From: Nageia nagi
Taxonomy: Eukaryota > Plantae > Pinophyta
DNA: 64,000 nt
NCBI GenBank assembly: GCA_050084985.1
Contig: JBITNC010000002.1
Span: forward strand, 16,554,001 to 16,618,000
Direction of reading: 5' to 3'
The notes under the pieces are model-generated. The model was given only the letters and a program-made list of their open reading frames with translations. It was not told where the DNA came from and made no database searches. The position numbers and the translations under genes are program-made. Below are positions 967 to 46,758 of the stretch, in pieces. Numbering within the stretch: the stretch's first letter is position 1; every line of letters begins with the position of its first letter.

Positions 967-1065
967 CTAGTTCTGGATGTCACATTCTCAGGGGAAGTGC
1001 TTAATTTTCCTTCCTATATTGTTTCTGTGTATCCTGTGTTTCCTGAGAATGTCATGTATGGACTC

Positions 1066-1173
1066 AGGGGGAGTCTGTAAATGCCCTTTGTTATTGTTGA
1101 CAAAGGGGGAGAGAAAAGTCCCGATGTTGGTGTCTGATCAGTTGGTGTTGCCAACAATTCCAAAGGGGGAGAT
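1066..1173 (+). promoter_or_regulatory. Multiple polypurine tract (AGGGGGAG x3), Sirevirus-type
   Basis: AGGGGGAG at 1066-1073, 1104-1111 and 1164-1171; the last is followed by AT and then TGTTG. Confidence 0.85.
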
Positions 1174-3377: not shown

Positions 3378-3613
3378 GAATTAAAATATCAAAATCTTGA
3401 TATATCAAGATCTTGATATTTAACTCTAAGAAAATGCATGTATTTTAATTTTAAAAATCAGTATCCCAATATTTATTGGGATCTCAAACCTAAATCAAGA
3501 TCCTAATTTTAATTTATTGAAATCAAGATCCCAATTTTTTTGATATTGAATTTTAACTTTGCCCATTTCCCCCCACTTCCCCTTCAAGTTGACTCAGTTT
3601 CTTGCTTTCACCC
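3378..3613. mobile_element. Putative DNA-transposon terminus, related to 24800-25121
   Basis: GATCTC/GATCCC-rich subterminal zone; 3574-3613 matches 25082-25121 at 34/40 nt and both end CTTTCACCC. Confidence 0.55.
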
Positions 3614-4921
3614 TCAAATGGTATAATATTTGGTACAATTATTAACCTATCTACAAAGAGTCCTAAATTTATCTCACTTGATGTGAGGGTCATACCACTA
3701 GGAAGTGGATGTTCCTTGCATTTGTTATAATGCCACAAAATTTATTTCTTGATCACTTCATCATCTTCAATGGCATCTACTGCATAAGCTTCTTCCTCAA
3801 CATGTAACTCATTGAAAAGTTTGATGATTTTATGACTATTTTCCTTCAAACTCATTATTTTTTAGAATATTTTATCATCACTTAATCGAGTGATGATTTC
3901 TTCATAAATTGCATAATATGAGGTATATTCTAATTTGGAGGGGTGTGGAATCCATTATTGGTAGAACCAATCATTTGATTACCTATCCTTTTTGAACTAT
4001 CCAAATTTTTTGCAAAGCTTTCTTTATCCATAAGACTTTCATCAATCCATTCTTTGGTTATTTGTCCATGCAATTTGGTGTATTTTTGGTTCTTATGGAT
4101 TATTTCACTCTATGTCTAAGAAAATCACATTTTACAAACCTTTCTACCCTTAGTAACCTTCCTAGCTACAAGGTTAGTAGATTCATAAAAGATATTTGCA
4201 TTTTTTTTGCTAGTAACATAAAATGCCTTTGGAATATAATATGTAAATAATAACTTTAATAGGCTAATAATTGTAAAATTTTAATATGGGTTCAAGAGAA
4301 TTTATTTGCTACCCTAATTAAGAGAAGAATATCATAGAAAAGGTGGGTGCCAATATGTTGTATGTGTTTAATTACCCCTAGGATTTTAGCCCAAGTGAAA
4401 CTAATAACACATAATATTTAAGTATGAATTATCTAAGATTTTTAGCTCAAATAAACATATATGATATACAAAAATAATAGAAATTAATATAGAAGTAGTA
4501 TAATAATGAAATAATAGAACTAGGTTTTTATTGAATCAATGACATTAGTGATGTTGATAAGGAGATCCAAACATATAATTATAGAATATGGAAGATAGAT
4601 ATGCTAGAGTGGTAACAAGATTCTAATCTCAATATGAAGCATTTAGAAATTCCCAAGAGTAAGGTATTGACTAGCAAGATGTAAATATGATTGCTTTCTC
4701 AGGTTGGAGACACTTACATTTATGTAGGCATGAATTCCCACCAAATGACCCCTTGTAATAAGGTTGAAGCCCATGTCGGTGTACCTAACATAAAAATAAA
4801 AATACCACCTGAGATACGTGTGATTATAAACCCATAACATGATTAAAATATGATTCTAATGTAATCATGATATTACATCTAAGTGGGAGCACTTTAGGGG
4901 GAACAAATTTAGGTGTAAACA
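3614..4921 (-). mobile_element. Tat-like Gypsy 5' LTR (4356-4921), PBS (4342-4352) and decayed internal start
   Basis: Minus strand LTR begins TGTTTACACCTAAA and ends CAACA; followed by TGGCACCCACC (CpG-decayed tRNA-Lys-type PBS TGGCGCCCACC); both LTR ends resemble 57699-58501. Confidence 0.7.
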
Positions 4922-25121: not shown

Positions 25122-27671
25122 AATCTTTAAATTCAATTTTATATTTTTCATACTTCTCTATTCTTCTTTGGATTATGCAATTTCAATACTTTTCATTATA
25201 TATCCAAAGAGGGAAAAATGTAGACACCTAAATATAATTTTCTATTTATTATTAAATCATATTGTAGGTATGTAGATAATAAATTATTTAAATAATGTAA
25301 ACATCTAGAATATGTAGATTAATGTGCTAATAGTTTATTAATCATATGCTAGTCAAGGATAATATCTTAATCATGTTTATATCTAGAATTATCTTAAGAA
25401 TATAATTAATATTATATATTCTTTTGTAATTGTATTGAGATGATTATTATTGTTTCATTATCAGATCTCACCTTCTTTTATGTATTTGTAGGCATAAATG
25501 GAGGAACATGACTTGACAATCCCTATCAAATCTCCCTAATAGGGGGTTATCAAATTACTTCACATCACATTATTGAAATCTCTTGATGCCACTGATCTAA
25601 AAAAATATTATTCTCTAAGCTTGATATTGTGCTATATTCTACTTGCATATACCCTTTCAATGTAACAGAAACAATGCATTCAATATTGGTGCTTTATGAA
25701 TACGACACATGTGGTGTTGGTACCCTACAATTATGATGTGTGCAATGTTATTCTTTGGTAAGTAGAGTGCTAGATCTGAAGAATGATAAGCATTTATTTA
25801 GATCCAATCCAATACACTACATATCTAATCACATCTTAAGGATTACTATCATATTAGGTACACACTTTATTGGTTATAGGAATTAAGATATATATAAGTG
25901 ATTGCATCATATTCATAATCTTTATTTAACTTTATTTTTTTATTGTAAATCATTATTTAGAGACTATAATCACCATATCCTTAGAGACCAATACAAATTC
26001 AAGTTATGTAATATGAAATCAAAGAATGAAGATAGTTTCATATTTATTTATCCCATCTATTATAAAATTCAAGATCATTTCCATTTCTTATTTAAAGATA
26101 CCCACACTATGAATTCATAGATGGATTACAAATATAAAAAAATGCATCATGAGCTCTATATTAGAGAAGCCACCCACATGATAGATCTTGCAACACATCG
26201 AGCCCTAGAATTATCACATCCTATTTTCAACCATAGGCAACAACAAATCAAAAGTGTCACATGAACTTTAAATATTCTTGAAGAACCACATATTGGTGCT
26301 TCATCACTAAATGCTAATGCACCTCTTTAACTCTCCATATATAAGTTTCCTACCTCACTCAAATCTATTGTATGTTATACTCTTTTTTGTTTACTTCACT
26401 CTTACATATTGGAGTTACACTAGATGTTCCTTTGCTCTAATTATATGTACTTTTATATAGTTTTGTTGATTATTTTTATCATCTACAAATATTAATATGA
26501 TAGTTTGAAGTGGAGATTCATATGATATTTGTCTATCTTTAACCCTAGAGGTAGATACCCTTAAAATTAAATTTAATGAATAGTACAAAATTATCCAATA
26601 TTTATAATAAACCCTCCAAAATTAATCTTCTCGATATTCTTTCATATCAAAAGAAAATGATTAGTAAAAACATATGCATCCAAATAATACTATTGAAATT
26701 AAATAATGAAAACTTGTAACTCCTTAAACTAACAAACATCCTTAATCCTTGTATGTTAGTTTCATTCCAAATAAATCATAGAAGTATTCTTTCATTATGA
26801 AGAACTCTTGCCTAATGGATGCCACATGGAAGTCACCATAAAATCTCCAATAATAATTTTCTAACTTCAATGTTTTAAGACAAATATTTCTCAAGGGGAT
26901 GGTATATATCTAAATCGCATCTCCTTAATCTTTGTAAAGAAATATGGATGCAAATACATGTCACTCATAATTCTAAGAGAATAAGAAAGAAATTATCTAG
27001 TGATAAATTGCAAACTTACATTGTTAAAAAATCATTCCAAGTTTGTAGAGAAAATATTGGTGGTACTAGAAGCCTTTAAACATAATTAAAAGAGATGACG
27101 GATGCACAGTGTTTACTTTTCAGCTGGAAAGCCAGAGTATTGATCAGGTAAATAATGAAGCCACCAACCAATGGGAAGAACTTAACATGCAAAATAAGCA
27201 AGTTCATGAAGTGTGAAACAACTATTTTTGAAAGCACTTCTTTAATTTCTTAGTAGTTTTTTAATGTGTTTTCTGGCTCCTATAATTTCTTAGTAGTTTT
27301 TTTTTTTTAATGTATTTTAAAACCTGAAAGAGATCTGGGTGCAAAAGAGATTTACAATCGATCAACCACAGTTGAAGAATTTCAAGCATGTATTGGCCTC
27401 ATCTGTACGCATTTTCTACTCCATTAAATTTTCAGAAATTTGTCACTTTCTCTAACGTTTAGTCTCTAGTTCGTTGAAAGAAAAAGTAAAACATTCAGAA
27501 CCATCTATTGAAATTAAAATACAGAATTTGAAACTTCAAAAAATAGAAGCAACCTTGGGATTAACTGAACTGTATAAATTTCACTCACATGCAGTATGAC
27601 ACGAACTGTTATTGTTGGAGTTGTGCAAATTTGGCAGATAATAATAATTTCAGTCCAAGCCAATAGATTTC

Positions 27672-27788
27672 CAAAAGCATTATTGAGCGTAGCATTGACG
27701 ACTCAATGGATTGGAATGGGCAGAAGAGCTGCCCATAATCCAAATACCTGCATTTTAGTCATCAACGCTGCGCTCAATGACGCTTTTG
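27672..27788 (-). ncRNA. MIR397: MIR397 precursor, copy 1; mature UCAUUGAGCGCAGCGUUGAUG (27760-27780)
   Basis: Mature arm differs from canonical UCAUUGAGUGCAGCGUUGAUG only at U9C; it pairs with 27680-27700 (2 mismatches, 2 G:U); basal stem CAAAAGC/GCTTTTG; inner stem ATGGGCAG/CTGCCCAT. Confidence 0.95.
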
Positions 27789-27855
27789 CTTTGGCAACTC
27801 ATCACTCCAAGCTTCTCGTACAAATTTGTTCATGGGAGAAGCCATGGAAGGATTG

Positions 27856-27976
27856 ATTTATAGCTGTGATCAGACATTTAAAAGAGTATGTTTAAGTAGT
27901 ACAGGTGAAGAGTACATAGTAATAGTCGTACGTTAGGTTTGTTAATAATTGCAGTGCAAATTGGCCTGGGCAGTAC
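27856..27976 (-). promoter_or_regulatory. MIR397-1 promoter: TATA box plus 4 GTAC copper-response motifs
   Basis: TATAAAT on minus strand at 27856-27862; GTAC at 27899, 27912, 27928, 27973 (one more at 27818). Confidence 0.8.
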
Positions 27977-28709
27977 AATATAGTTTTGGAAGAGGCTCGA
28001 GTCCTGTCCCTCGCTCGTATATTTATTTTAATGATCAATCACATGCTATGCTGATCTGAAATTTGCGTTGTCAAAGTATTTTTTAAAAAGAATGATTGAC
28101 TTGGACTGTCTTACACTTCTGTAAAGAATAATTGAAGTAAACTACTCATCTCATCATTTCCGCAGCACTAATGCATTTATGTAGACAGGATAGTTAATAA
28201 TGTTGTTAATAGTTTTGAATAAATATGAGTTGAAGCAATGGTGTTTGAGATTATGTTTTAGTTAAAAGTTTGTAAGAGATTGAAGGTTGATTTGTATTGT
28301 TGTTGTGTAGTATATTTTGAAATATATGAAATTTGAATTTTCATATCATGTTTGAAATTTTGAATAGATCTTAAGAATTTTGTAAGTGTTGTTTATGTTT
28401 TTTCATGATAATAGATATTTAATTAATTTAATATTTTTAGTAATTTTTATTTTATTAGAGCAAGATTTTACATTAAATACTATAAGAATACTATCCACTT
28501 CAAATTTTCTAATAAAATAGTATCTATTAGTAGGTTAGAGGTGATATAATTTATAGCATAATCAAAAGGGTACTCTTACAATCTTTTGTTTTTGGTTTGA
28601 GATTATTGTAAATCTCTTTTTCGGTAGACTTTCATAGAAAACTCTAGAGTTGGTAAACTTGGAAAGTCTATAAAACTGCATCTATTTATTTAGTTATTTC
28701 ATAGCTACA

Positions 28710-28848
28710 ATGGCTACAACTTATTCTTCCTTGTCAATCCCACCATTAAGAGGAGATAATTATAAAAATTGAAAAAAAATCAAGATCAAGATTTTATTGG
28801 AAAAATAAGGAGTCTTTGAGTTTATAGAGAAAGGATATGTAGAGCCTT
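28710..28848 (+). mobile_element. Copia gag N-terminal remnant
   Basis: MATTYSSLSIP..GDNYKN..KIKILLE..VFEFIEKGYVEP, cut by the LTR at 28849. Confidence 0.55.
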
Positions 28849-31302
28849 TGATACATCCTACCCGGGTTAGGACTTTTGATCACCTTATCAGGATCGTAAC
28901 TTTTGATCTAGGTGTCCGTTTGAGCCTTTTTTTCAAATTGAGAAGAATTGAATTCTCCATGCTATGAAAAAGTTCTCATGAAGAGCCTTGGAATTTTTTG
29001 GACCACTTTTTAGGACCTAAAGAGTTCATCTTAGGGCCTAAATATAGCTTTGAATATTATTGAAATCGTAACTTTTAAGAGTGTTAGAATTTTAATATCT
29101 TTTGGGTGTAGTGTTAGTTTAGAAATGTTATTTTTGAAATGGAACAATTGTTGAATAATAGATGCATTTTTCCGTTTTGGAACTCATTCCAGCTATATTT
29201 TATACCTTCTAATAATAGCAAGTCCTATTTTTTCTAAAAAATAGAGATGTACTAATTTAAATAATAAGTATAGGTAGGAGTGTTTTGGGGCCTTTTTGGA
29301 TATAAAATATATTGTAATCCTCTTGAAGGACTTAGTGTAAATACAAGAAATTAATGAAATTATGATTGTAAAATATTATTTTCCATTGATTTGGTTGATT
29401 TTTGTTAATCATTTTGGAGTCCATTTTGAGTCTCTTATAGGAATCTACATCATTTGGTATCATAGTGGGTGTGATCTCACTTAGGGGAGAAGATGCCACT
29501 TGGAAGGGCACGCAGAGGATTATATGCCCAAATGAATAGGCATATAGAGGATCTACATGCATAAATAGAATCATTAATTAATGCGATTAACTGCATGGGG
29601 AAGAAATGACCCAATGCATATCCAAATATAGGATTTGATACTAAGAGCATGGTAGAGGAAGATGGATATGAAGTTGAGATGGAGGTAGAACCAAAAGGTC
29701 CAAAGGGAGTAGTGGAAAGATTTGAAAATAGGTTAATCCAAGCCTTGAAAAGGATAAAAGGAAACTAAGATGGAATCAAGATCGAGGTCCTTAAGTACTC
29801 TGGTGGGTTAAAACCAAAGAACTTTATTGATTGTGTAAACAACATGGAAACATATTTTGAATGGAGTAATCTTTTTGAGGATAAAAAGGTGAAGCTTGCA
29901 TGCAAAAAGTTGAAGGGGCATGTGTTAATTTGATGGTATAATCTATAGACTGCATGATAGAGGAAGGAAAAAGAGAAGATTAGGGCTTGGGCCAAGATGA
30001 AGAAAAAGTTGCAAGAGAAATTTATGCCTATAGACTATTCCCAAGCCTTATTTCATAAATTTTAGAATCTTTGATAAAAGGACCACAACATCGAGGACTA
30101 CACCAACAAGTTCTACAAGTTATCCATTCAAGTGGAGCATAATGAGACAAATGAACAAAGGGCTATGAGGTATGTGAATGGTTTAAGGTTTTTTATTCAA
30201 GATGAGATAAATGTGCATCACATTCTTATTGTAGAGGATGCATACCAAATAGCCCTAAAAGCTAAAGAGGATTAATAAAGGGGTAAGAAAGGATTAGCAC
30301 CCTCTTCAAATTGAGTGCATGGTAGATCCAATTTTTTCAAGGGCTTGAATCTTCAATATTTTCCAAAGAAGAGGATTAGGATGGACAAGGTCAAGGTACC
30401 TTCCAAAGAGGAAGAGGTAATGGGAAAGATAGTACTAGGAATGGACCATGGAAAGGTCATTCATCTATTATAGATATGGAGAGGAAGGTCATAAAGAATA
30501 TGGACATCCCTAGTATGATGGTAAAGAGAGGGGACCAACTAGGGTCATTCTAGTCAATGAAGAGGAGGAGCATGAGATATAAGTTACTGCAAATATGGGT
30601 GAAACTCTCATGATAAGGAGAGAACTAATTGTTCCAAAGAAGATGGTGGAGATTCTTGGCTACATACTAATATCTTACGCATAAGATGCACATAGGGAGG
30701 AAAGATATGTAATGTGGTCATTGATAGTGGTAGTTATGAAAATATAATCTCTAATATTATTGTTGATAAATTAAATCTAAGATGTGAGAAGCATCCAAAA
30801 CCCTATCGTGTTTCAAGGATTAAGAAAGGAAATGAAGGGTAATTTAAGAATATTGTTAATGATAATTTATAAGCATTCAATTAATTGAACTTGCAAGAGC
30901 TGAGTCCTTTTCAACTAGAGGATAATGATACACTCTACTAGGCTAGAATGTTTTATCACTAGGATCGTAACTTTTGATTCAAGTGTCCATTTGAGCCTTT
31001 TTTCAAATAGAGAAGAATTTAATTCTCCACATCGTGGAAAGGGTCTCTTAAAGAACCTTATATTTTTTGGATTACTTTTTAGGACCTAAAGAGTTCATCT
31101 AAGGGCCTAAATTTATGTTTGAAGATTAATTCCTAGCTTTTACAAGTGTTAGAATTTTAATATCTTTTGGGTATAGTGTTAGTTTAAATTTTTTATTTTT
31201 AAAATGGAGAAGTTATTGTATAATGGATGCATGTTTCCATTTTGGAACTCATTCGATCTATATTTTAGGCTTACTAAAAATAGTAATTCCTATTATTTCT
31301 AA
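28849..31302 (+). mobile_element. CRM-like chromoviral Gypsy carrying only gag and protease remnants
   Basis: 5' LTR 28849-29452 (TGATAC..CATCA), PBS TGGTATCA, gag KKVKLACKKLKG..WAKMKKKLQEKFMP..RYVNGL, protease VIDSGSYENII..HPKPY, then second LTR from 30926 (TGATAC) truncated at ~31302. Confidence 0.85.
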
Positions 31303-31529
31303 TTATTATTGTACAAGACATAGTTTGGTAGTTGCAAAATAATATAGAGTAACAATTTAAGTTAATGAAATTGATTAAGAAATCAATTACATATTTTCTA
31401 CTTTTTCTTTGTAGGTGAAATTATGTATGCTTTGTACATGCTTTACTTTATTTAAGGAAAAATGGTGATATAGAAAAGTGGAGAAGCCTCTAAATTATAT
31501 CTTTATTATTTTTTATTTTACAATCTTGT

Positions 31530-32990
31530 TTTTTTTGTAAGGTTAAATTGAAAGGGGTTTTTTAAATAGGAACCCGCCTACAAGAAATAAATTTGGTTCA
31601 TCATCCTTCCCTATTTATTTTATACAGTTTTGGATGTGAGAGAATCAAGGTAATCCATAGGCTAGATACTAGTTACAATCCATTTCTATGTATAATACAA
31701 TTCTAGTCCTAATCTATAGAGAGTATCAACTATGAAGTTCATAGTGAATCTGTCTTCCTTCCATAGAATAATTCTTATCAAGTTTGAGGAGAAAACCTTT
31801 CCCAAACTGAAGCAAGAAGGCCTATTTTCCATTAGCAATATCTTTAATAGTTTCCTTCTCTCTTACCTTGCCATTATTTGATCTTCCCACATGATGCTAG
31901 CCTACATCCATTCTTTTTGACATACTTTTAGTGACTCTATGATCACCTCTGATGAGTCGTGTTTCTTCTTAGTAAATATGGTGACCCTTAGCCACCAAGT
32001 AAACTTTCTTTCCTTTATTCATAGCTATCCTTATGGTTGCCTCCTCTATTTATTGATTTACTGAATCCAAATCCTTTGTGTTTCAACTATTTATGGCTAT
32101 GAGTCGAATGCTCCTCCTTTTTCCTGGTTCATTAATTTCATCTCATTTATGCTTTTAGCTATTTCATATAGTGGTTTGAGGGCTACCTAAACTCCATTAG
32201 CCTCTCTATCCATTGATGACGCTTTCTCCTAATCCTGATCCTCAAGCTTTCCTTTTAATCTCCATTCCTTTTTCTCTACAGAGATTCTAGTCGAACATGA
32301 TTGTTCATTGTATCCAACCTTAGTGCAAATTTGATTGAGATAAATATTTTGCTCATACTTAATCCTTTGGTTATGCTTACTAAACTTTGATTCATGAAAT
32401 ATTGATGGGTATTTTAGTACCAAAATCCACCATGACATACATTCTAGCTGCTTGAGTATGGTGCACACTTTTGTAACTGGGTATGCAATGATAAACTTAC
32501 CAAATACATATGTTGTTCTTTCATAGACCTTTTGATTCAAAAATTTCATCAGGGAACCTGTGAGAATCACCCACATTAGAGTCGCCATTAGTTGAGTCTT
32601 TTTCAAATCAAAGCTAGGATAACATTTCTCCAAAATCATTCCTCTCTTTTCAAAAAAACATGGTCTACTCAAAACTTGATCTCTATCTTTTTCTGACCCA
32701 AATGTGAACATAATGAAATCATTTAGCATGGTAGCCACTTCTACCTTGGTCTTCACCTTCCATCGTGAACTAACCCATTCCCAGATGAGATCAATATTTG
32801 ATTTTATGCCATGCATTTTCCTAATTACACTTAATCGACCTCTTTCTTCTACTTGTGTGATTACATCATTCAAGATTATTAGAGAGATTTTATCCCCCTT
32901 TGCTTCTGCTTGTAAATGAGGTATCACTTGAGCTTGAGGTATCTCCCCTTGGGAGAGTTTCCACACTCAATTGATGGATGCCATGGCATA
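31530..32990 (-). mobile_element. L1 LINE remnant (ORF1, DUF4283-like, and decayed ORF2 start)
   Basis: ORF 32229-32966: WVSSRW..FIMFTF.SEKDRDQVL..P.FF..MILEK.YPSFD..MWVIL..L plus decayed zinc knuckle CTKVGYNEQSC. Confidence 0.75.
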
Positions 32991-33909
32991 CTACAAAGTT
33001 TGGCTTCTACGCAAGAACTTTATAGATACTATGCTTGACCTAACCCATTTTATAATCTTGTTTTAAAGTTCAATATAATATACTTTTTACACTTTATGTT
33101 ATTATTTAATCAATTATTATTATTATTTTTTTATATATTAGCAAAGTTTGTGGATAATATTCATGTTAGTAGATTATTAGTCCTTTAGTATTTAATATAT
33201 GTTTCTAGGACTATAAGTTTCTCAATTAGATAAAGTATTTACTCTAGGAATATAATTTTTAAATGGAAAATGAACTATCTCAAGAAGGCATGATTGATTT
33301 TTCATATAAAAGGTTCTATATGCATTTAAACTAAGTTATCTTGATGATATCTAGTTATTTCGTAGGTTCATTTCCACATGTTTAGCATGTTCTTAAGTAA
33401 AGGAATAATGTAGATTTGGGACACATGAAATATTTTACTTCTTTTGTGATGTAAAAATATGTAATGAGATCCATTATGATTATGAACTTTAATTAATACA
33501 TACTAACTACTATTATTTTTAGGAGATTTTTAATAGAGATAGATAAATATCATACATATTTGACACTTATCCCCCTCTCTTCATGAAGGAAAAAGAAGTT
33601 GATCTATAAAAAATAAAAAAAATGATAAATTGAGTAATTTATGAGAAAATTATTTTCTCAAATATTGATTGATACTTAACACTTTTATATGTAAATTTTT
33701 ATAGTGATTTAAAGATCATGTTTTTTAAATGTGGAATACATAAATCCTTTTAAATTTGAATAATATTTCTTTTTCTTTTTCAATAATGTCTATGATGTTT
33801 ATTATGCATACTATAAATAAAAATATAATTTTACTAGAACCATTGTATTATATGAAGTCTTTTCAATTATGAAAATAACATGAAACAAAGATAGATGTTA
33901 CTATAATAT

Positions 33910-34365
33910 GTAGTCAAGAAAATGAAGTTGTTCAAAGAAGAAACTATTCTATTGTTGAGATGGCTAATATGTGTGTTGAACTTCAATAGTATTTTTCTTC
34001 AAGATGTATGCCAAATGAATTTGTTGAATTCTTGAAGCAACACGGAATCAAAATATATCTTATCATAACATATTCTCAACAAGATGGAGTTGTTCAAAGT
34101 TAAACTATTACATTGCTAATATGATAAATGCATGTTGAAGGCTACCAATCTTGAATAGTATTCTTTTTTTGTAAAAGTTATCAATACAACAATTTATTTA
34201 TTAAATTACTCCAATATTAAGTCACTTGCTACAATGGGACATTGAAGAGCTTTTGATTGATAGAAAACTTATGTCAAGTCTTCGAAAGTACAAGATATAT
34301 GTACATTCCTAAGTAAATACACAACAAAGTAGATGAGAAGAGTATCAAATGTGTTCTTATTGGTT
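33910..34365 (+). mobile_element. Copia integrase remnant
   Basis: QENEVVQRRNYSIVEMA, EFVEFLKQHGI, KVDEKSIKCVLIG. Confidence 0.65.
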
Positions 34366-36056
34366 TTTTGTTCTTACAAATGAAGATTTTGAAAAAGAAA
34401 ATTTTAAGAGGAAAATTTTTGAGGTGGTTTCTTAAAAATAAGCCTCAAAGAAATATGTAGCATAAATGGTGTATTGATATAGTAGTATAATGTTATCTAA
34501 ACCCACAAACATCTCGACATATGGTGGAAAAGAAGTAAAACTAAAGAGATTGATTATAACTTCATGTGTAAGATTGTTAGTGATCTAGAACTACAGAAAA
34601 TAAAAAGAATTCCTTGGATTGCCTTTTTAGAATAAAATAATTGAATTTGCTTAGTATAGTTCCTTCATTGAAGTACAAGAGATGGGGGCTCCATAATGCA
34701 CCATTTACAAAGAAGTAATTCCTTGCAATTTTGTACTTTAAATAAACTATTTAGAGTATAATCAATAAATGCAAGATTTATCTTACAAAAGGTTACACAT
34801 ATAAGGAGGACCAAAAGATATTATTAAAAATGTTGATCTTCTTAATGTATGATATATCAAAATTGATGATCATCTTTTCTCTCAAACTTTTGAATAAGTC
34901 GTTTATATTTTAATTTTGATATTTATCAAGAACTTAGAGAAAAAAGTAAAAGTATATTACCAACGGGAGATCAACCAATCTATGAGACGATTGTAGTAGA
35001 CTATTACATAGCATGCATATATTTGTAATAGGAATCAACATCCAACATAAGACATAAAACACAACAAAATCAACACATAAAGAATGACCATTCTAATTTA
35101 TGTTAATAATTTATTATTCATGAAAAGAAAAATTATACTTTTGTTTTATAAATTAAGTATGAAAAATATTACTTGAGAAATTTCTTACCATAAATTGCGA
35201 ACTTACATTATTAAAAAATCATTTTAACGTTGTAGACAAAATATTACATTGTTTCTTGATTTGACAAGAAATGGGAGAGGTTTTTTTTAAAGTATTGAAG
35301 GAAAATCAGGTCAATCAAAACCAGGCATTAGAAGCCCTTAAACACAATTAAAACAGATGAATGACGCAGAGTCTTCAGTTGTCAGCTGGAAAGCCAAAGC
35401 GTATCGATCAGGTAAATAATGAAGAGTATTGATCAGGTAAATAATGAAGCCTCTTATTATTGGGGAAACTTTGGTACAGAATGCTCCATTTTTGAAACCA
35501 CTTCTTTAATTTCTTAGTATTTTTTAAATCTCTGTTTTCAGGTTTCTTCGAGTTCTTCGTAGTCTCTTTTAATGTGTCTGAAAGCCTGAAAGAGATCTGT
35601 GTGCAAGAGAGGTTTACAATCGATCAACCACAGTTGAAGAATTTCAAAGCCATTCATATGGATTGATAAAAGTCTTCAAACGAATGGAAAGATGGGATTC
35701 AAAATTTCAAACATAAACACCCGCTATGGAAAATGCCTTTTCTATCAGTCCACCTAGCATGTGTTCGCCGATCTGTACGCATTTTCTGCACTCCTCCATT
35801 GAATTTTCAGAAATATGTCAATTTTTTGTAACATCTGTTCTGCAGTTTGTTGACAGCAAAATAAAATCTTAAGAACCATCTATTTAAATTAAAAGATAGA
35901 ATTTGAAACTTCAAAAAATAGAAGCAGCCTTGGCATTAATGAACTGTATAAATTTCACTCACATGTTGTATGAGACGAACTCTTATTGTTGGAAATGTGT
36001 ATCTGGTACATAATAATCTCCGTTACATTCCATTTAATTCCAAGCCAATAGATTTC

Positions 36057-36160
36057 CAAAAGCATTATTGAGAGCAGCATTGACGATTCAATGGATTGAA
36101 ATGAAGAGAAGAGGTGCCCCTGCGTTGGAATCGTCAATGCTGCAGTCAATGATGCTTCTG
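36057..36160 (-). ncRNA. MIR397: MIR397 precursor, copy 2; variant mature UCAUUGACUGCAGCAUUGACG (36132-36152)
   Basis: Paralogous to copy 1 over more than 1 kb; mature arm differs from canonical at G8C, G15A, U20C; pairs with 36065-36085 (positions 10-21 perfect, mismatches at 2, 8, 9). Confidence 0.88.
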
Positions 36161-36206
36161 CTTTGGCAACACATCACTCCAAAGTTGTTGGACAAATTTG
36201 TTCTGG

Positions 36207-36412
36207 TGAGATGCTGTGTAAGAATCAATTTATGGCTGTGATGAGATGCCGTGTAAGAATCAATTTATGGCTGTGATGAAACATTTTAGATAGTGAGTTT
36301 AGGTAGTACAACCGAAAAGTACATAGTAAGAGACAGCTTGCTTGCAATTGCAGTACAGATTAGTTTGAGCAGTACAATATAGTTTTGTAAAAGGCTGGAA
36401 TCTGTAAAGTAC
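36207..36412 (-). promoter_or_regulatory. MIR397-2 promoter: duplicated CATAAAT box plus 5 GTAC motifs
   Basis: 35-bp tandem duplication 36207-36276 covers the TATA-homologous site; GTAC at 36306, 36319, 36353, 36372, 36409. Confidence 0.78.
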
Positions 36413-37169
36413 AAATATATTTAATTTAATGATACACTACATAGTGTGCTGATCCTGTCAAAGTGTTTGAAAAAAGAATATTTGAATTATACATGGTGTT
36501 TGGATAACGAAGAGACAGTTTGCCATGATGAAGGGAATGGAATTCGACTGTCATACTCTTCTGCAAAGAATGATGGAATTTAACTACCAATCTCATCATT
36601 CCGGCAACACTAAATTTACGAAAGTAAACAAACAAAATAAAAATAGGCTTCCTTCTTTTATGACATGACTTCTATTCAATTTGTCATAGACAATTTTTAA
36701 CCAAGACAACAATTAATTTTATTTTATTTTTAAATCTTCAAGCATGTTGAACAATAACGGAAACAGTTTCCATAAATCCATTCTAAATGAATGTATTTCA
36801 TTGTTAACACCATTAGTTCATTTTCTATTTATATCAATCATTTTTTAATGAAGTAATGCATGAATTTAATTTTGTGAAGAGAGTGTTATTAAACATAAAT
36901 GCTTAAACTCAAGTGAAGAATTCTATGATGTTTCAATACATGATATTCCATACTTTTGTTTTTATAAAAGTTTAGGATGGGAAAAATGGAAATAAGAGTA
37001 GTAAATAGTCCTAATACCTACTTAGATTGAAATAATCAAAGATAAACGATATCGGAAATAAATAATATTCAACCAATAACAAATTGGTACCTATCAAAAT
37101 GGAAGATCAGATACTTACCTATGATACTTATGCGTTACGGATGAAAGGAAGCAAGACATGAATGAGCAA

Positions 37170-39120
37170 CGATAAGATGATGACATCATACAAATCACAG
37201 CTTGTCAATATGTCAGAAAAGGTCATTATCGATCCTCAATGGACCATTATTAGTCCTTGGTAGGTCATCATCAATCCTTAATAGGTCATCGTTAGTCCTC
37301 ATTAGGCCATTTACAGTCCTATTTTGCAAGAACTATGCATTGTGACCAAGTTTGATGCTTCCTTCACCTACTTAGATGTCGAAAATGTTCACAATAACAA
37401 TTTTAGTGGAACATGCCAATTTTGCTCCAGGAAGTGTTTGGATAGGTTTGATCCATGTTGATCTTATCGACATGTATGAAAATAATTTTAAATAGTGTTA
37501 GATATGTCTATTTAGTGTTCGGGTCGATTGGTGGCATCATCGGTACTTGGTCGAGTGATTTTGTACTTTTTAAGATAGATAAAAATGTGTTTTGAAATAG
37601 CCTCTGTACAGGTGAAATATTTCAAAATTTGAGAGGATTTAGGATATTAAATTCTTACAAGAGGTATTTTAAAATACAGAGAACATATAGTTAAAATTTT
37701 TGCTCAAATGGAGATTTGAGGAAGAAATGGTATGAGTTGCAAAAAGCTAGTTTGTTACTTTTTCTAGCTTTGACGATGCAAAATCAACATCAGAGGCCTT
37801 TTTGCAGGAGGATTTACAAGCAACTCAAAAATTGAAATTTGAACTATAAGTGTAAGGATATAGTGTGAGCTTAATTTTCAAATTTCATCCAAAATCGATA
37901 TCCTAACAAGAAGTTATGGCTCTTGGAAATTGGATTCAGAGCACTTTTTCCAATTTTGGATAGTTTCATTTTTGTGATAGTTTTGCTTTCGAATGCTCAA
38001 ATTCATATTTTCTAATTGTTGAATTCTCCATTCAAGTGTTATTTCACTCTTAGCTCATCGAACTAAACATATTTGCCTTTTGATCTGTGTGATTTCGATG
38101 CCTCCAAGTGTAAGAATGAGAAAGTTGCACAATAGTTTGGCCATATATTGTTTGACAAAATGTTTCAACAATTTTAGTAATATATGCAAATGTGAAAATA
38201 TTTTTTACTTAAATTGGTATCATGAGAGAATAATGTAGCATGGAATATTAGTTTTTCCTCATAAGAATAATTGGTAGGTGACAGGAGTTACAAATGAGAA
38301 TATTACATAAGAGGGAGTTACATAAAGAAAGTAGTTATAAAAGGAGTGATATAAGGAAAGACTATGAAAAGAGGTTTACTTAGAGAGTTGGGCGGGTTCT
38401 TTTGATTTTAGGGAATTGAGAGAGAGGAGTAATTAAAATAAAAAGTTTACTTTTTGAATTTTTGTAGAGGATTCTCAAAGACATGTGAGAAACGAGAGTG
38501 TGGTGGAAGCAATAAAATGGTGAATGTAATAAGAGAGTTTATGTTTTGAATAATAACAAAGTAAGTGCCATCGGATCATCAATGGATGTTATCTTTACTT
38601 TTTGGCTGAGAGCTATAGAGTCAGTTCAAGCGTTATTATGGTGAAATAAGATTTGAAATTTGATTTGTCAATGTGAAGGTGAAAGATTTTAGTGAGTTAG
38701 AACACTCAAGGTCTTATTCATAGGAATCAAATTCTTCTTTAGAGCTTTTTTCATTTTTTCATGTCGATTCTTGGTAACAGGTTTTGGTGCTCTTTTTAGT
38801 TGGTGTTGTTAAATCTAGGGATTGGTGTCTCCTTACAGTTGGTGCTGATAAACTTTTAGGTTGATGGGTACCATTCCTGATAGTGGATGCTGTCAAAATT
38901 TTGTAAATACCAAATATTTTGAGGTTGTATTTGGATAGGAGTCCAAATAAGCCATTAACATAGTGATTTTTCCCGCATTGGGTTTCTATTATAAATCTAG
39001 TGTTGTGTGATTGCTTTATTTAATTTGAGTTTCTTGCAAGTATTTATTCATGTAGTTGGGTTAAATTTCAAATTTATACATTGATTCACGCCCTCCCCTC
39101 TCGGTGTCACACCTATTTCA
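37170..39120 (+). mobile_element. Older Sirevirus-like LTR remnant (5' boundary unclear)
   Basis: 3' end ACATTGATTCACGCCCTCCCCTCTCGGTGTCAC..TTTCA mirrors the end of 1174-3377; shares CAGTTGGTGCTG and GATGATGACATCAT motifs. Confidence 0.65.
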
Positions 39121-42100
39121 ATAAGATTATGGCATGACATAGTATTTTGTGATGATGTCATGCTAGTAAAATCTTAAACTTAGTTATTATAGTGTAACAT
39201 AGTGTATTAGAGGATAACATCATCCTAGTGATTCTTGGATAAAAAAATTTCATAATATATATTTCAAAACTCACATCATATAGACTATTTTATACCTTCC
39301 CAGATTCAAATCTAAGTTGTGATAATGTCATGATGGTAAAACCCCCAGTAATACATTATTTTCTCATTTTTTGGGAATAGAATACTTAAAAATATGCCTC
39401 ATCAGATTATAGTTTTGTATTTCCTCACAAACAAAATCTTCAAATGATTTCTATGTTTTGCTCTACTTTATCTTGACTTCTTACCCAGAAACTTTCAGCT
39501 CAAAACAACGTCATATAATAAACTTATATCCAAAATGCAACCCATAGTTTTGTAGAACTTTAACAAGAATGAACTCATGTTCTTAAAAATGAAAGTTCAT
39601 TATGGAGATATGGATTGTTATTTGCATCAATAAAAGTATGGTGAATCATGTATAGGATGATGAAAGAATTTGAGCCATGGATCTAATTCATAGAAAAAGC
39701 TCAAAATATGACTGATTGAAAAGATTGATGAATCCAATTTGATTTTCATGAATATTAAGGATCACCATGAATCAAATCTTATTACCATTAACTTGTGTTG
39801 GACGGATATCAAGAAGATGTTGATCCAAAAAATATGAGGATCAAATCCAATAGTCAATAATATCAAGCTTATATATTGATTGATAAAATACCAATTGAGA
39901 ATTATAATGGAATCATATCGAACATCGACTAAAATTCAAGAGATCCTAACACTAATAAGTTCATGTTCGTAAGGATATAAAGTACGTTTGACATAAACTT
40001 GAAGAGATTGGTTAAGGAGATAATAGATCAAATCTTATCTCCATTAATTCTAATTGAATACTGAGGAATTTGATGTTGGATAGAGACAAGTTCTAATCTA
40101 GATAAGTTTTATTTCATTAAATGCATTAATCTTTTATGTTTTTCTCTATTGTAGAAAGATAATTTGTAATGGCTATATAAGCTAGAAAAGTTTACTCAAA
40201 AAATGAGTTAGAATAGCTAAAACTTTGGGTATTTTTAGGATTTTTCTTATGCTTTCTTGATTATCTTCCTCTATCCATAACTAGCTTTCTTTTTAATATT
40301 TCTACTAGATGTTATTTTAATATCTTCCATATGATATCTAATAAGAATTGTTAGAGCCTAAAAGTGTTGTATTCTTTATGAATGATTATCTATTTGTTTG
40401 AAACTTTTAGATATTAAGAGTTTATTCAAAAATTGATCCCATTATGATTAGAATTGGTCATTCATATCGATTGGTTATAGGTTGGATTCAGTAAAGTGTA
40501 GCAATTCTTAATAGATTCTTAGTAGTTAGTAGAATAATGATATATTTTCTTGCTTTATTTTATATTTCTTTTGAAACCATTATGATCCATAGTCCAAATA
40601 TAGAAGAGTATTATGATCCATAGTCCCATGATCTATTTTCTTTCTTTATTTTATAACTTAGAAAATACCGTATAAATTTAACCTTGTGCATGGTCAACAT
40701 ATCATTGTCTACCAACTGGCATAGATATTCTATCATCTTAATTATATTTTTTTAGAAATTATCAAGCATATTTATACTATTAGGTACTTAACCCTAATAG
40801 AGGGAAGGATTAACACCCTTCCACTAGAGTTGTGGTGGTCATAGTAGACTTCCCTTGGATTTGCAAGCTCAAGGTAAGGTCATCCAGGTTTCATGACACA
40901 AAAAATACCATTACCAAGCAGTTCAATTATTTTTTTTCTTTTGGATTTGGAAGCTTTTCCATCATATATTTAGAAATTTCTTCAATAGGATAAGAATGGG
41001 GAGAACTTATGGTAAGATGACCATACCTGAATGGTATATCCTACAATGAAATGGTAGGTTCTCATAATTGATTGATCCTATTCAAATTTCTCTCCTTATA
41101 TTTTAACCTTCATGGGAAAATAATTATCCAAGCCAAGGTAGACAAAACTCTTAGTGTAAGAACTAGTATTGAAGCCTTGTTTCCTATCTAACACCTGCAT
41201 AAAGATATCTAGAGATTTATTGATGGTATCAAACAATCACTCCTTCCAAAAAACCAAAGAGAAATTTTACAATCTAACCCAAACTAGAGAAAATCAAAGA
41301 AATTATTTATTTAATTTAAATTTTGTATATCAAGGCTTTATAAATAACCCATCCTTTCTTAGGAACTAAGCACCCCTTAGAAAACTATATCTCTATCTTC
41401 TTTAGGCTCGAAATAATAAAGGAAATACCCATAGGAATATATGATAAAACTAACCCCTATGCTATTACATCTATTTTACCCCCAAAACCATTGGATTACA
41501 AGAAGATGGGGGTGATTGTCCAAGAAGAAATGAATTAGGGCTTTTGATTCTAGCTCCATTTATACTTTGTTGATATCTAGGTTCTTTATCCTTACAATGG
41601 GTTCTTCCTTTGCAATGAGTGGATAACCAAATTCATTCTTATGGTATAAAGTGGGGGTGCAAACAAGCTATCACTACCCATTAGAGACCAAATAATAAAC
41701 AATGAAGTATGAATTTTTCTTTAACATGTCCTTATAGGAGGGATTTGATGGTTGAAATTGATCTCCTCCATTGAAGTTTTACATTATTGATGACTATAAG
41801 AATCCTTCCAAATTCATAATGAATGTGTTGACCTCAATGATAAAAAACTCACTTCGAATTAAGGATGATAGAACCCCTTATTTCATTAAAATAAAGTCAT
41901 CGCTTAATATATATATATTTGTGTGTATGTATGTATATATACACTTCCATCTATTTTTTGAAAGATAAATGAATTTGAACTAAATAATGTGGATCTTACA
42001 TATTACTTTTTGGAATGGAAGTATACCAAACTAAAGAAGGTATTTTTTTAAAGAGATTCAATATAAAAAATTGTAATGAATTTATAACATAATTTTCTCT

Positions 42101-42134
42101 AGGAGAGTAATTGATGAAAGAAAATGAAAGATAA

Positions 42135-42700
42135 ATGTATCTTGTGAGAACTAGACTAGATATAGCCTATAGAGTGTTACTTATTTCAATATTCATATAA
42201 AATCCAAGTAAAACATACTTGAAAGGTATAAAGAGGATAGTAATGCATGTAAAAGAAACCCAAGATATGACATTTATTTATTATAGTTATAATTAAAAGA
42301 TAATGTTATTTTTTATAGTTATAATTAAAGAATAAGAATATGTCATTATATTTCAATTGGCAACAGAATCATGAAATGATCTTTTAAAAAGTAAATTATC
42401 ATAGTTTCTATCCATATATTGGAAGATGAATACATGGTAATACTACTTGCATGCATATATTGTATACAACTAAGAAACTACTTGAAGAAATGTGTGCATT
42501 ATACATGGTAATCCTACTATAATTCATTATGAAAATATAACAGTTATTTCCCTTTCAAAAAACATTCTATTTCATAGTAGGAGAAAACACATAGATATCA
42601 AGCATCACTATATTAAGAATTACATGGAAAAAAATATTATTGATTTAAAATATATTACTTGATCAACAAGCAAGTGATTGACAAATTCTAAAATCAAGTG
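42135..42700 (+). mobile_element. Copia RT/RNase H remnant
   Basis: YLVRTRLDIAY..NPSK..KRI; FHSRRKHIDIKHHYI. Confidence 0.7.
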
Positions 42701-45454
42701 ATTAAAGAAATTATTAGAAATAACAAAATATTTGCATTATGGAGTTAGTAGCTTGATTGATTCAAAATTTTCTCTTTTAATGAAATGACCATAAATATTT
42801 TGAACTTTTGTAAATTCAAATAGATATACTCTTACAATGAGGTGGAAATAGTATTTTAAAATTTAAATAATTTGAATATTTATTCTCTTTAAGATAGGTT
42901 GTAAAATATATTTATATCTTTTATTATCTATTATGGTTGAATAAGATTTACTAAAATGTTATGAGTCAAATGCATTTTCATTGCATTTAGGGTATTTGGA
43001 TAGTTAATACAATAATTGAATATTTTCAAATGTATAAATATAAATTAGAGAAAGAGAATTTAGGATAAATGTTTAGCCCAAGTTTATAAAAGGTTCAAGG
43101 TTGATATCTTATGGTGTTATGTTGTAGAAACCATACTTTGAAGCATACAAAAGGTACTTTTATATCAATTTCATTTTTAGTTCATAATTAATATTAAAGA
43201 AAATGAATAAGGAATAAGAACATAATCCAAAAAAGCATTCAAGTAGAAAGAACTAATTATATAAGCTAAGGTAGAAGGATATTTAAATATTATTCTCTTT
43301 AAGTCAAAACATTTCAACTTTTACAACTATTGCAACATTCCTAAAAACATCATAACATATTTTTTTTTTCAAAAAATCCAAATTTCATTTCAAGTGAATC
43401 ATCACCATTTTATCGTTCTTTTTGATAACACATCATTTAAGGGGCATAAACTAAACTCATAAACATCATGAACCTCATCATCATCACCTTTCTTAAATAA
43501 CCATAGTCATATTATTTGATAATAATCTTTAATCATAGTAAAAATCGTAAATCATCATTACATCTCTTCACCATAGTTTTATGTTGCACTTTAACTCACT
43601 CAAAACATAATACAAAAAGGGAGAAATATAGACTCAAAACCTGCACATTGTCCTCGTAGCATTACATTATAGAAACTAATTACTAAAATCTTAAAACTAA
43701 TAAAAATTAACTATCCATATTAGGGAAGTTGGGGAAGTAATGGAAATACTCTACAAGAGACCCAAGTTCAAATATTTGCACCCCTACATGATAAAACATG
43801 TAAAATATTTTGAAGTACCCTTCTCAAAAATTTTAGAAGAGGTTGAGTAATATTTGAAAAGAAAAACACTATAAGATTTAATCAATACATATAAAACCCT
43901 AAAAGATCCAAAATATCATTAAGAATATATAAACCCCTAACTTCTAAACAAAATTGACACATGGAAGCAATCACTATAAGTGTATTGTCAAGACTTGCAA
44001 AGATAATTTTGAGACAATTCAATTATTTTTTTCTTATCTTATATATATATATATATATATATTTTCTTAACAATTCTCAATCATAAATATGTTTAAAAGA
44101 GTATGCCATAGAAATTTTAGATTCTTCTAAGATTCATTTGACCTCTTCCAATTCATAATAATAATTATTTTGGGTATAAACATTTATAGAGGAAAATCTC
44201 TAATAATTCATGAAAATATTAGTTAGCATTTACAAAATTGCAAAGGTAACTCAAGGTGCTTATGAAACAAAATATTTGGATCAATTTCTAATTATTTACA
44301 CATTATTTATCATATATATACATATCAACAAATCCATTATGGTAAATTTGATATAGATTTATCATTTATTTATAGCTATTTAATAACTTTCCTCATAATT
44401 TTGAATGATACTCTTTCTATAGCTTTTATTTACATTTTTATCAAAGGAGATAGAGGCTTAAACATCCTTTTGAATATGATAATTCATTTGGAAAGCCTCT
44501 ATAGACTAAGTTATTAATCAATTTTTATCCAAGATTGTGTAAAAATTCTATTATATGCAAGAAGATTTCGTAAGAGAAACATCCATGTTTTGAATGAAGG
44601 TATATGAAGAAGGTATAATGTATATCTTTGTGGCATCCTTAAGGCCACTTCCATTTGAATATAGGTATGAATAAGTTACAATTTATGTAACTATTTCTAT
44701 GTAATTTTTTAGATCTATAATCTTGATCTCATTAGCCACTAAGATTAGATTACTATATCAGCTGAACTCCACTCTAATTGGGAAACTTTTAAGATTTATA
44801 TGCACCTATCAAAAGAAAATGTTGGATTTATTTTATGAATGAATGTATAGGGATGCCAAGGATTTTATGAATTCTTACAATACTTATTAAAGAAAGAAGG
44901 GTAAAATAATTAATTCCCTAGGGTTTCTCTAACCACTCCTCATCCTAATGATAACAAAGTTTGATATTGCAATGCATTTTATCAAAGGCTTCTAGCTTGT
45001 GGAGGTAAATAAATGATATTTATAATCGTCAATTAGTTTATATGGGTATGCTCATTTATATATATAAGAACACCAATATATAGATACCATTATCACATAA
45101 ACATTCATGGATAACATATTCCAAATTTAAATAATTCTTTAGCCAATTATCAATTATAGTGATCTCAATTTCCCTACCAAATTCTAGCAAGACCTATTTA
45201 GGTAGGAAGGCATTACTTTATCCTATCTTTTCACTCATAAATAAATGGTTTAATCAAAGCAATTAATACATATTTCAAGATATATATTAGATTCTTCACC
45301 TCTTTTCACCAATATTGTTGGATTCAATAGTTTCCTTTGGTTGAATAATAGTATAACACCTCTTACTATTCTTCATCTAAGATGATGTCATTTAAAGCAT
45401 TACACGACTAATCACTATCATATATACTAATGTATCTACCTAGTAATTTCAAGA

Positions 45455-45752
45455 TAGAAGCAATGGATGCCACACTCACCACTCATACAAGGGTAACTTG
45501 GTTATAACTCAAAACATTTGAAACAAGAGGCTAACATACATATAGATTAGTGGGAGTTTGATGTTGGAGATATGGTCTTCCTACGACTCCAACCCTATAA
45601 ATAAACCTCCTTAAAGCTTAAGGTTGACACAAGTTTACCTAAGATTTTATGGACCTTATAGTCGCTCATTAGATTGGTGAGGTCATGTATAAACTAAAAT
45701 TACCACTCACGAACAAGATCCATATGATTTTTCTTATATCTTGCCTCAAAAA
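45455..45752 (+). mobile_element. Chromoviral Gypsy integrase C-terminal (GPY/F) remnant
   Basis: EFDVGDMVFLRLQPYK..PRFYGPY..IGEVMYKLKLP..IH..F.ISCLK. Confidence 0.8.
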
Positions 45753-46379
45753 TATGGTTGACAGAAACTCTTGAAAGCAACGATGGAAAATATTTTACTC
45801 AGTTTGCTATTGTTGCCGAATTGGGTGTTGGAAAAAGATGATTCCTTGTGAGAAAGGGATACAATATTAAAAATCCATTTGTGAGGAAAAGATGTTTCTC
45901 TTTAGAAAGGGCTGCAGTATTGGGGAACCATTTAAGAATTTGGATGGGGACAGAGTAGAAAATCCGATACGACTTCACTATCAACAAATGATGGATGGAC
46001 ATGGAAACCTGACGGGAACTAAAGGCTGGAATGTGGACAGACTAAGAACTAATTATGAATCAATGATGGGGAGTGGAAAAACTAAGAACGAAGGAGGCTG
46101 CTGAACTTTTGGTAGAAGAATACTCCATGTAGCCCATCGTGAGAATAACGGGTATGATATGCAGAGAAATACTTCATATACAAAATGTATTGTAGATTAT
46201 GAAATCCAATTTACAGCTTACACTGTAATATGTAAAATTAGAACCCATTTATGTATATTTCTTCACAGTTTTGAACTCTGCACCTGCACCTGCCTCAAGA
46301 AAAGCTCAAAAGACGGACTCCATACTGTTGTAGTTATGTCTTTTGACAGATTGTAGATTGGATTGGGGTTATAAGATTT

Positions 46380-46500
46380 CCAAAAACATTATTGAGTGCA
46401 ACCTTGACAATTCAATTCAAAGACTACAAGAGAAAAGAAGAGCGGGTAATGCGAGTACCTGCACTGAAATTATCAACGCTGCACTCAATGATGCTTTTGG
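46380..46500 (-). ncRNA. MIR397: MIR397 precursor, copy 3; mature UCAUUGAGUGCAGCGUUGAUA (46471-46491)
   Basis: 20/21 identical to canonical miR397; pairs with 46389-46409; basal stem CCAAAA/TTTTGG. Confidence 0.93.
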
Positions 46501-46536
46501 TATTGAAAAATCCAAAGTTGTTGAAATAAAGAATTG

Positions 46537-46758
46537 ATATATCACAGAGCAAAAGGGTAGTACTAGCCCATCTCCTACCTCCCTATGTTTTTTCAAGCAA
46601 TGAAAGATCTGAAATGGCGAGTTTGGGTAGTACCAATCCATCTCCTACCTACCTCCGTTTGTTTTTAAAAGCGATGTATCTGCAATGGGCAGCTTGGATA
46701 GTACAGTCCAGGAGTACGTCTCCTCAACTAAAGGTGGTTTTGTTGCCCGTTGGAGTAC
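46537..46758 (-). promoter_or_regulatory. MIR397-3 promoter: TATA-like element plus 5 GTAC motifs
   Basis: ATATAT at 46537-46542; GTAC at 46560, 46630, 46701, 46714, 46755. Confidence 0.75.

Follow-up and report, generated by a model that had tools for sequence, protein, structure and literature searches.

The main subject of this study is a cluster of three MIR397 loci from the gymnosperm Nageia nagi, found within a 64,000-nucleotide (nt) stretch of a contig with a GC content of 29.6% (further referred to as the window). All three hairpins are members of the MIR397 family with the folding of good microRNA (miRNA) precursors, and each is directly preceded by a dense array of GTAC motifs. By analogy with the characterized copper-responsive systems of flowering plants, we consider it probable that they are three paralogous MIR397 genes, each having its own minus-strand transcription unit under SPL7-type copper control and each encoding a laccase-targeting miRNA. 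The positions of the hairpins and of the candidate mature and star strands are as follows.

27672..27790, minus strand: MIR397 copy 1 hairpin (Rfam MIR397, 51.0 bits, E 1.9e-7)
27780..27760, minus strand: copy 1 mature strand, UCAUUGAGCGCAGCGUUGAUG, with the change U9C relative to canonical miR397; star strand at 27698..27678
36057..36162, minus strand: MIR397 copy 2 hairpin (Rfam MIR397, 52.1 bits, E 1e-7)
36152..36132, minus strand: copy 2 mature strand, UCAUUGACUGCAGCAUUGACG, with the changes G8C, G15A, and U20C; star strand at 36083..36063
46381..46501, minus strand: MIR397 copy 3 hairpin (Rfam MIR397, 49.7 bits, E 4.1e-7)
46491..46471, minus strand: copy 3 mature strand, UCAUUGAGUGCAGCGUUGAUA, with the change G21A; star strand at 46407..46387

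The window was searched with the canonical miR397 21-mer UCAUUGAGUGCAGCGUUGAUG, as printed for Populus miR397a (PMC8438446), allowing at most three mismatches. Three minus-strand matches were found, at 27760-27780, 36132-36152, and 46471-46491, with one, three, and one mismatches, respectively, compared with none in 100 shuffles; the starts of the matches are 8372 and 10339 bases apart. The Rfam MIR397 model (RF00704), applied in the E-value mode, covers all three hairpins over its full length (positions 1-117) with E-values from 1e-7 to 4e-7, and MIR397 is the sole Rfam family matched by these loci. Weaker plus-strand Rfam matches are the reverse complements of the same three hairpins. In this mode, neither further MIR397 copies nor other copper-miRNA (Cu-miRNA) families were detected in the window; at the curated gathering thresholds, no MIR397 was reported in it, and the only element found was a tRNA-like one lying elsewhere. 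Thus, the original prediction of three same-strand miR397 hairpins spaced by about 8.4 and 10.3 kb holds for identity, strand, and spacing alike. The mature strand occupies the 5' arm and has U as its first nucleotide in every copy. The exact mature 21-mers of copies 1 and 3 have appeared in the literature (bean, maize, Persicaria, and a study of miRNA adenylation), while that of copy 2 has no occurrence in the literature searched. Copies 1 and 3 are each only one position off canonical miR397 and should act on ordinary miR397 sites.

Plant miRNA loci are recognized by a stable hairpin, a miRNA/miRNA* duplex with at most five mismatches and no large asymmetric bulge, and 2-nt 3' overhangs. Folding of each precursor, which had been proposed as a check, yielded minimum free energies of -62.6, -44.6, and -50.0 kcal/mol for copies 1, 2, and 3, respectively, with z-scores of -8.7, -5.7, and -7.5 relative to dinucleotide shuffles. 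The 21-nt duplexes contain two, three, and two mismatches and no bulges, so that with these z-scores all three hairpins agree with the duplex criteria for plant miRNAs. Duplex position 2 is unpaired in all three copies, as it is in the MIR397 family consensus. When longer flanks are folded, the lower stem of copy 1 extends for approximately 16 bp with one internal loop, and that of copy 3 consists of 10 bp, a loop, and then 7 bp.

Comparison of the three copies reveals compensatory double changes at three stem pairs. One of them, at mature position 9, had been pointed out in the original prediction and was recovered here: the pair is C-G in copy 1 and U-A in copy 3 (U.U in copy 2). The two further compensatory pairs are at mature position 21, G-C versus A-U, and two positions further up the stem, past the 3' end of the mature strand. 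The pairing of the hairpins is maintained through many substitutions.

The second line of evidence comes from the upstream regions, where the following features were observed.

27818..27976, minus strand: copy 1 proximal promoter, five GTAC motifs with 5' ends at 27976, 27931, 27915, 27902, and 27821
27976 and 27902, minus strand: GTACTRC sites of copy 1
27862..27856, minus strand: putative TATA box of copy 1, TATAAAT, picked by eye
36207..36412, minus strand: copy 2 proximal promoter, five GTAC motifs at 36412, 36375, 36356, 36322, and 36309, three of them GTACTRC
36207-36279: tandem duplication of 35 nt in the copy 2 promoter, 97% identical, doubling the putative TATA-like box CATAAAT (36234), picked by eye
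46537..46758, minus strand: copy 3 proximal promoter, five GTAC motifs at 46758, 46717, 46704, 46633, and 46563
46543..46537, minus strand: putative TATA-like box of copy 3, GATATAT, picked by eye

The GTAC motif occurs 120 times in the window, that is, once per 533 bp. The chance rate of one per 350 bp assumed in the original prediction is close to the mononucleotide expectation (one per 364 bp) but exceeds the rate actually seen. Exactly five motifs lie upstream of each hairpin, at distances of 28-183, 144-247, and 59-254 nt from the 5' edge in copies 1, 2, and 3, respectively. In a sliding count, only three sites of the window have at least five GTAC motifs in 200 bp, and all three are directly upstream of the hairpins; the Poisson probability of at least five motifs in 250 bp is 1.3e-4 per site. 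The predicted local enrichment of GTAC is thus confirmed. The putative TATA-like boxes are situated 82 nt upstream of the mature 5' end in copies 1 and 2 and 50 nt upstream in copy 3. The 35-nt tandem duplication in the copy 2 promoter is recent. Within the copy 3 promoter, a segment of about 78 nt is duplicated (46555-46633 and 46625-46704); each unit includes one GTAC core reading GTACTACC, the second such site resulting from the duplication.

The extended motif GTACTRC occurs 10 times in the window, compared with a shuffle mean of 4.3. Seven of these sites (two, three, and two in copies 1, 2, and 3) are in the three promoters, all in the sense orientation, against approximately 0.036 expected in about 750 bp at the background rate. 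Further, the sense strand has GTACT at 13 of the 15 promoter cores (background 0.28, P 3e-6) and TGTACT at 10 of them. Arrays of both GTAC and GTACTRC thus show a strong and specific concentration upstream of the hairpins, and the extended motif, which the original prediction did not use, strengthens the copper interpretation. The three remaining GTACTRC sites of the window (13634, 14521, and 61734) are also on the minus strand, so that all 10 share one strand, which we take to be a coincidence.

The three promoters have no other copies elsewhere in the window. Two other arrangements of the cluster were considered and rejected. A polycistronic transcript is unlikely, given that the copies are 8-10 kb apart and that a separate TATA-like box and GTAC array precede each of them. 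A hairpin carried by a transposon does not agree with promoters and units that lack both further copies in the window and terminal repeats.

If these loci function like their Arabidopsis counterparts, copper scarcity would lead an SPL7-type SBP-domain factor to bind the five-GTAC array, which consists mostly of TGTACT or GTACTRC sites, nearly all of them gene-oriented, within about 250 bp upstream and beside a TATA-like box. The bound array would drive transcription of the primary miRNA (pri-miRNA) from start sites predicted about 30 nt downstream of the TATA-like boxes. DCL1 would then cut the hairpin in the register proposed above, releasing from the 5' arm a 21-nt miR397 with a 5' U, which would guide AGO1 to the conserved site in laccase mRNAs. 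Copper induction, SPL7-type binding, and laccase cleavage, like small-RNA production itself, are here predicted by analogy.

As regards the origin of the cluster, copies 1 and 2 share more than the hairpin, as seen from the boundaries of the duplicated units.

26988..28171, minus strand: duplicated unit of copy 1, containing the promoter, the hairpin, and about 680 nt downstream; homologous to 35176-36613
35176..36613, minus strand: duplicated unit of copy 2; homologous to 26988-28171

The alignable part is about 1.2-1.6 kb long, with an overall identity of about 77% and blastn blocks of 73-83%. In the global alignment, the best-kept part is the 400 nt downstream of the hairpin (82-89%), and the promoter is 68-79% identical; within the hairpin, the mature arm is 81% and the star arm 93% identical. 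Identity of about 77% indicates that the duplication is old. The Kimura two-parameter distance with the hairpin excluded is 0.27, which corresponds very roughly to 60 million years at the rate of 2.2e-9 used for dating long terminal repeats (LTRs) of Welwitschia, an estimate that depends on the rate chosen. Copies 1 and 2 have three GTAC cores in common; despite gains or losses of the remaining ones, each promoter still has five. Copy 3 is similar to the other two by BLAST in the hairpin arms only. Apart from these arms, a co-linear block GTACTACC(C/T)AAAC aligns across copies 1, 2, and 3, and the block CAACAACTTTGGA just upstream of the hairpin is also aligned between copy 3 and the others. 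According to these alignments, copies 1 and 2 originated by an ancient duplication that involved about 1.2-1.6 kb, and copy 3 is older still. Hence the local amplification proposed originally is real, and it is ancient. The statement that each copy has a GTAC promoter of its own is correct in that the promoters are separate, but those of copies 1 and 2 are homologous and should not be counted as independent observations.

The region of approximately 400-600 nt downstream of hairpins 1 and 2 (27062-27671 and 35324-36056, minus strand) is 82-91% identical in blocks, above the promoters. It contains a possible splice donor of the GTGAGT type about 90 nt past the hairpin. Its conservation could reflect a constrained exon/intron structure of the pri-miRNA, or gene conversion.

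Copy 2 is the most divergent in its mature strand. Two of its changes, G15A and U20C, convert G.U wobbles to Watson-Crick pairs, and the hairpin keeps 28 of the 30 stem pairs of copy 1 despite 12 substitutions in the two 36-nt arms. In a neutral simulation starting from copy 1, with the divergence of the flanks, 8.8 pairs were broken on average and the probability of at most two broken pairs was 0.003; at 15% divergence this probability was 0.04. The result, which has modest power, points to selection for the fold of copy 2 rather than free decay. On the other hand, its mature strand differs from canonical miR397 at three of 21 positions, including position 8, and therefore copy 2 may miss the canonical sites and may not regulate them. 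With its three changes (G8C, G15A, and U20C) it is either specialized or weakened.

Some indication of what a specialized copy 2 could recognize is provided by the strand complementary to the mature one. In one frame, copies 1 and 3 give INAALND on this strand, and copy 2 gives VNAAVND. INAALN is presumably the conserved laccase peptide at the miR397 site; a literature search for INAALN and VNAAVN gave spurious matches only, and comparison of the antisense open reading frames (ORFs) with PDB and Pfam (E up to 10) yielded no laccase link, as expected for a seven-residue motif. Five mature positions vary among the paralogs: three correspond to codon position 3 and two to position 1, the latter giving conservative I-to-V and L-to-V replacements; this pattern is suggestive, not significant. 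In the same frame, the copy 2 changes comprise one at a third codon position and two at first positions giving Val. It may be that copy 2 is a retargeted miR397, not a dying one, whose ideal target would encode VNAAVND instead of INAALND, and, separately, that the one-directional GTACTRC array is an SPL7 layout common to gymnosperms and angiosperms; we consider this reading unlikely. The VNAAVND/INAALND pattern would be consistent with co-evolution of the miRNA paralogs and diverged laccase paralogs.

Several observations weigh against three working, copper-controlled genes. The RF00704 scores of all three hairpins are 3-5 bits below the curated gathering score of 55. The G8C change of copy 2 falls in the core targeting region and, together with a change in the star strand, creates adjacent duplex mismatches at positions 8-9. 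The conservation of the mature arm between copies 1 and 2 (81%) does not surpass that of the flanks (77% overall and 82-89% downstream), so that constraint on the mature strand since the duplication is not demonstrated. The GTAC clusters of these two copies share ancestry, and the 16-nt block GTACTACC(C/T)AAAC in copy 3 is, by a rough estimate, only marginally beyond chance. Finally, all SBP-box proteins bind GTAC, hence the motif alone is no proof of copper control.

Three other explanations were considered. The most radical is that the pattern is accidental, with the hairpins being inverted-repeat debris resembling miR397 and the GTAC clusters arising by chance or from a repeat family. Such an origin would suit a region rich in repeats and AT and the Rfam scores under the gathering cut-off, but it is effectively refuted by the absence of miR397-like matches from 100 shuffles as opposed to three in the window, by E-values of about 1e-7 to MIR397 as the sole family, by the exact coincidence of the only three GTAC clusters of the window with the three hairpins, by promoters without other copies in the window, and by the compensatory changes in the stems; we consider it extremely improbable. 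A more realistic possibility, still a doubtful one, is that not every gene of the cluster is alive: copies 1 and 3 work, whereas copy 2 is decaying or has moved off the canonical laccase sites, its array and hairpin being relics not yet eroded. Copy 2 indeed combines three mature-strand changes, one of them in the core pairing region, with a pair of neighboring mismatches in the center of the duplex and the least stable fold among the copies (-44.6 kcal/mol, z-score -5.7); its mature arm has diverged from copy 1 as much as the flanks have, and the 35-nt duplication has disturbed the spacing between its TATA box and the array. Yet the retention of 28 of 30 stem pairs through 12 arm substitutions (P 0.003 at the flank divergence and 0.04 at 15%) speaks against erosion, as does the fact that two of the three mature changes turn G.U into Watson-Crick pairs. 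Moreover, copy 2 retains five GTAC motifs, has the most GTACTRC sites (three), and scores highest of the three in Rfam.

The remaining explanation accepts the MIR397 loci as real and concerns only the factor that reads the arrays. These could be recognized mainly by other SBP-box factors, for instance, the miR156-regulated SPLs of age and development, in which case expression would track development or wood formation rather than copper supply. The GTAC core is common to all members of the SPL family (PMC9516184), and SPLs with names other than SPL7, OsSPL9 of rice and MaSPL4/5 of banana, are reported to drive Cu-miRNA promoters (PMC13222354, PMC13000952). However, both the rice and the banana factors are described as copper-linked, and the flanks found here, GTACTRC and TGTACT, are those associated with SPL7 in chromatin immunoprecipitation (ChIP) and electrophoretic mobility shift assay (EMSA) work in Arabidopsis. 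We therefore regard this explanation as decidedly unlikely and favor SPL7-type copper control of the three MIR397 genes.

The DNA between and around the copies contains few recognizable features.

32229..32966, minus strand: ORF of 245 amino acids with a DUF4283 domain (Pfam PF14111, E 1.9e-12)
28890-29237 and 30961-31302: pair of direct repeats of about 350 bp, 83-91% identical and about 2.07 kb apart

The DUF4283 ORF, probably a transposon-related relic, is the only ORF of at least 90 amino acids in the region 26000-48500, and nine shorter ORFs between the copies have no Pfam match. The repeat pair, located between copies 1 and 2, looks like the LTRs of a small decayed element. Consequently, the description of the copies as dispersed in transposable-element debris is plausible from this ORF and this LTR-like pair, but it is only partly documented. 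A small array of 21/42-nt tandem repeats (66-78% matches) occupies positions 37220-37310, just upstream of the copy 2 unit. Two other elements were noted outside the cluster. The plus-strand segment 20365-20437 matches the Rfam tRNA family with 44.3 bits (gathering score 29) and has several non-standard acceptor-stem pairs; ARAGORN found no tRNA anywhere in the window, and the element is probably a tRNA-derived relic or the head of a short interspersed nuclear element. A weak minus-strand match to the plastid psbA 3' untranslated region family (3377-3424; 31.6 bits with the gathering score of 55.8, E 0.043) sits in the GC-richest part of the window (positions 1-4000, 37-40% GC compared with about 29% elsewhere) and could be a plastid-derived insert or a chance similarity.

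Multi-copy MIR397 families and GTAC-rich MIR397 promoters have already been described (PMC4651229, PMC6848093, PMC9516184). The cluster is thus a real and ordinary part of a known regulatory system and leaves the knowledge of that system unchanged, while supplying an AT-rich gymnosperm genome with a clear-cut group of non-coding genes that had not been annotated. It also suggests that the chain from copper supply through an SPL7-type factor and miR397 to laccases is not confined to flowering plants, down to GTACTRC and its orientation. Two points are of modest interest, namely the extended one-directional SPL7-type array in a gymnosperm and the structurally maintained variant copy 2. Together, the three natural promoter variants and the one miRNA variant could be used in studying copper control of lignification in a gymnosperm.

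Laccases are targets of miR397, a conserved Cu-miRNA whose promoter is bound by SPL7 at GTAC (PMC9887407, citing Yamasaki 2009; PMC9516184). A literature search combining miR397, gymnosperms, and GTAC returned nothing on gymnosperm MIR397 promoters. Norway spruce has 21 MIR397 genes and demonstrates that the family is multi-copy in a gymnosperm (PMC4651229), so that three clustered genes are nothing exceptional; the text searched (PMC4651229) gave neither the genomic arrangement of the spruce genes nor an analysis of their promoters.

In Arabidopsis, GTACTRC is enriched among the SPL7-bound and SPL7-activated genes (Schulten et al., PMC9516184), and TGTACT is cited as the best SPL7 site in vitro (PMC9516184). 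For instance, Arabidopsis MIR397B (At4g13555) is under an SPL7 ChIP-sequencing peak with two GTACTRC motifs (PMC9516184), similarly to the two or three per promoter observed here in addition to five GTAC cores. It is also a laccase-targeting Cu-miRNA gene adjoining a second one, MIR857a (At4g13554), but in N. nagi the neighbors are three MIR397 paralogs 8-10 kb apart rather than two different families side by side. Further, the present case comes from a gymnosperm genome and has nearly all motifs in the sense orientation, and its binding and copper response are predicted. In Musa MIR397, GTAC motifs are likewise numerous near the precursor (11 in the proximal 500 nt); under copper deficiency, its expression rises 8-10 fold and that of its laccase targets falls (PMC6848093). 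This is a single studied monocot locus, whereas in N. nagi five cores per promoter are read from the sequence within about 250 nt. Finally, Ptr-miR397a of Populus, ucauugagugcagcguugaug, is one base off both copy 1 and copy 3 (PMC8438446). Functional tests were made on it in an angiosperm tree, and its negative effect on many laccase genes and on lignin content is documented; a corresponding role in laccase and lignin control is what the sequences of the N. nagi copies would predict.

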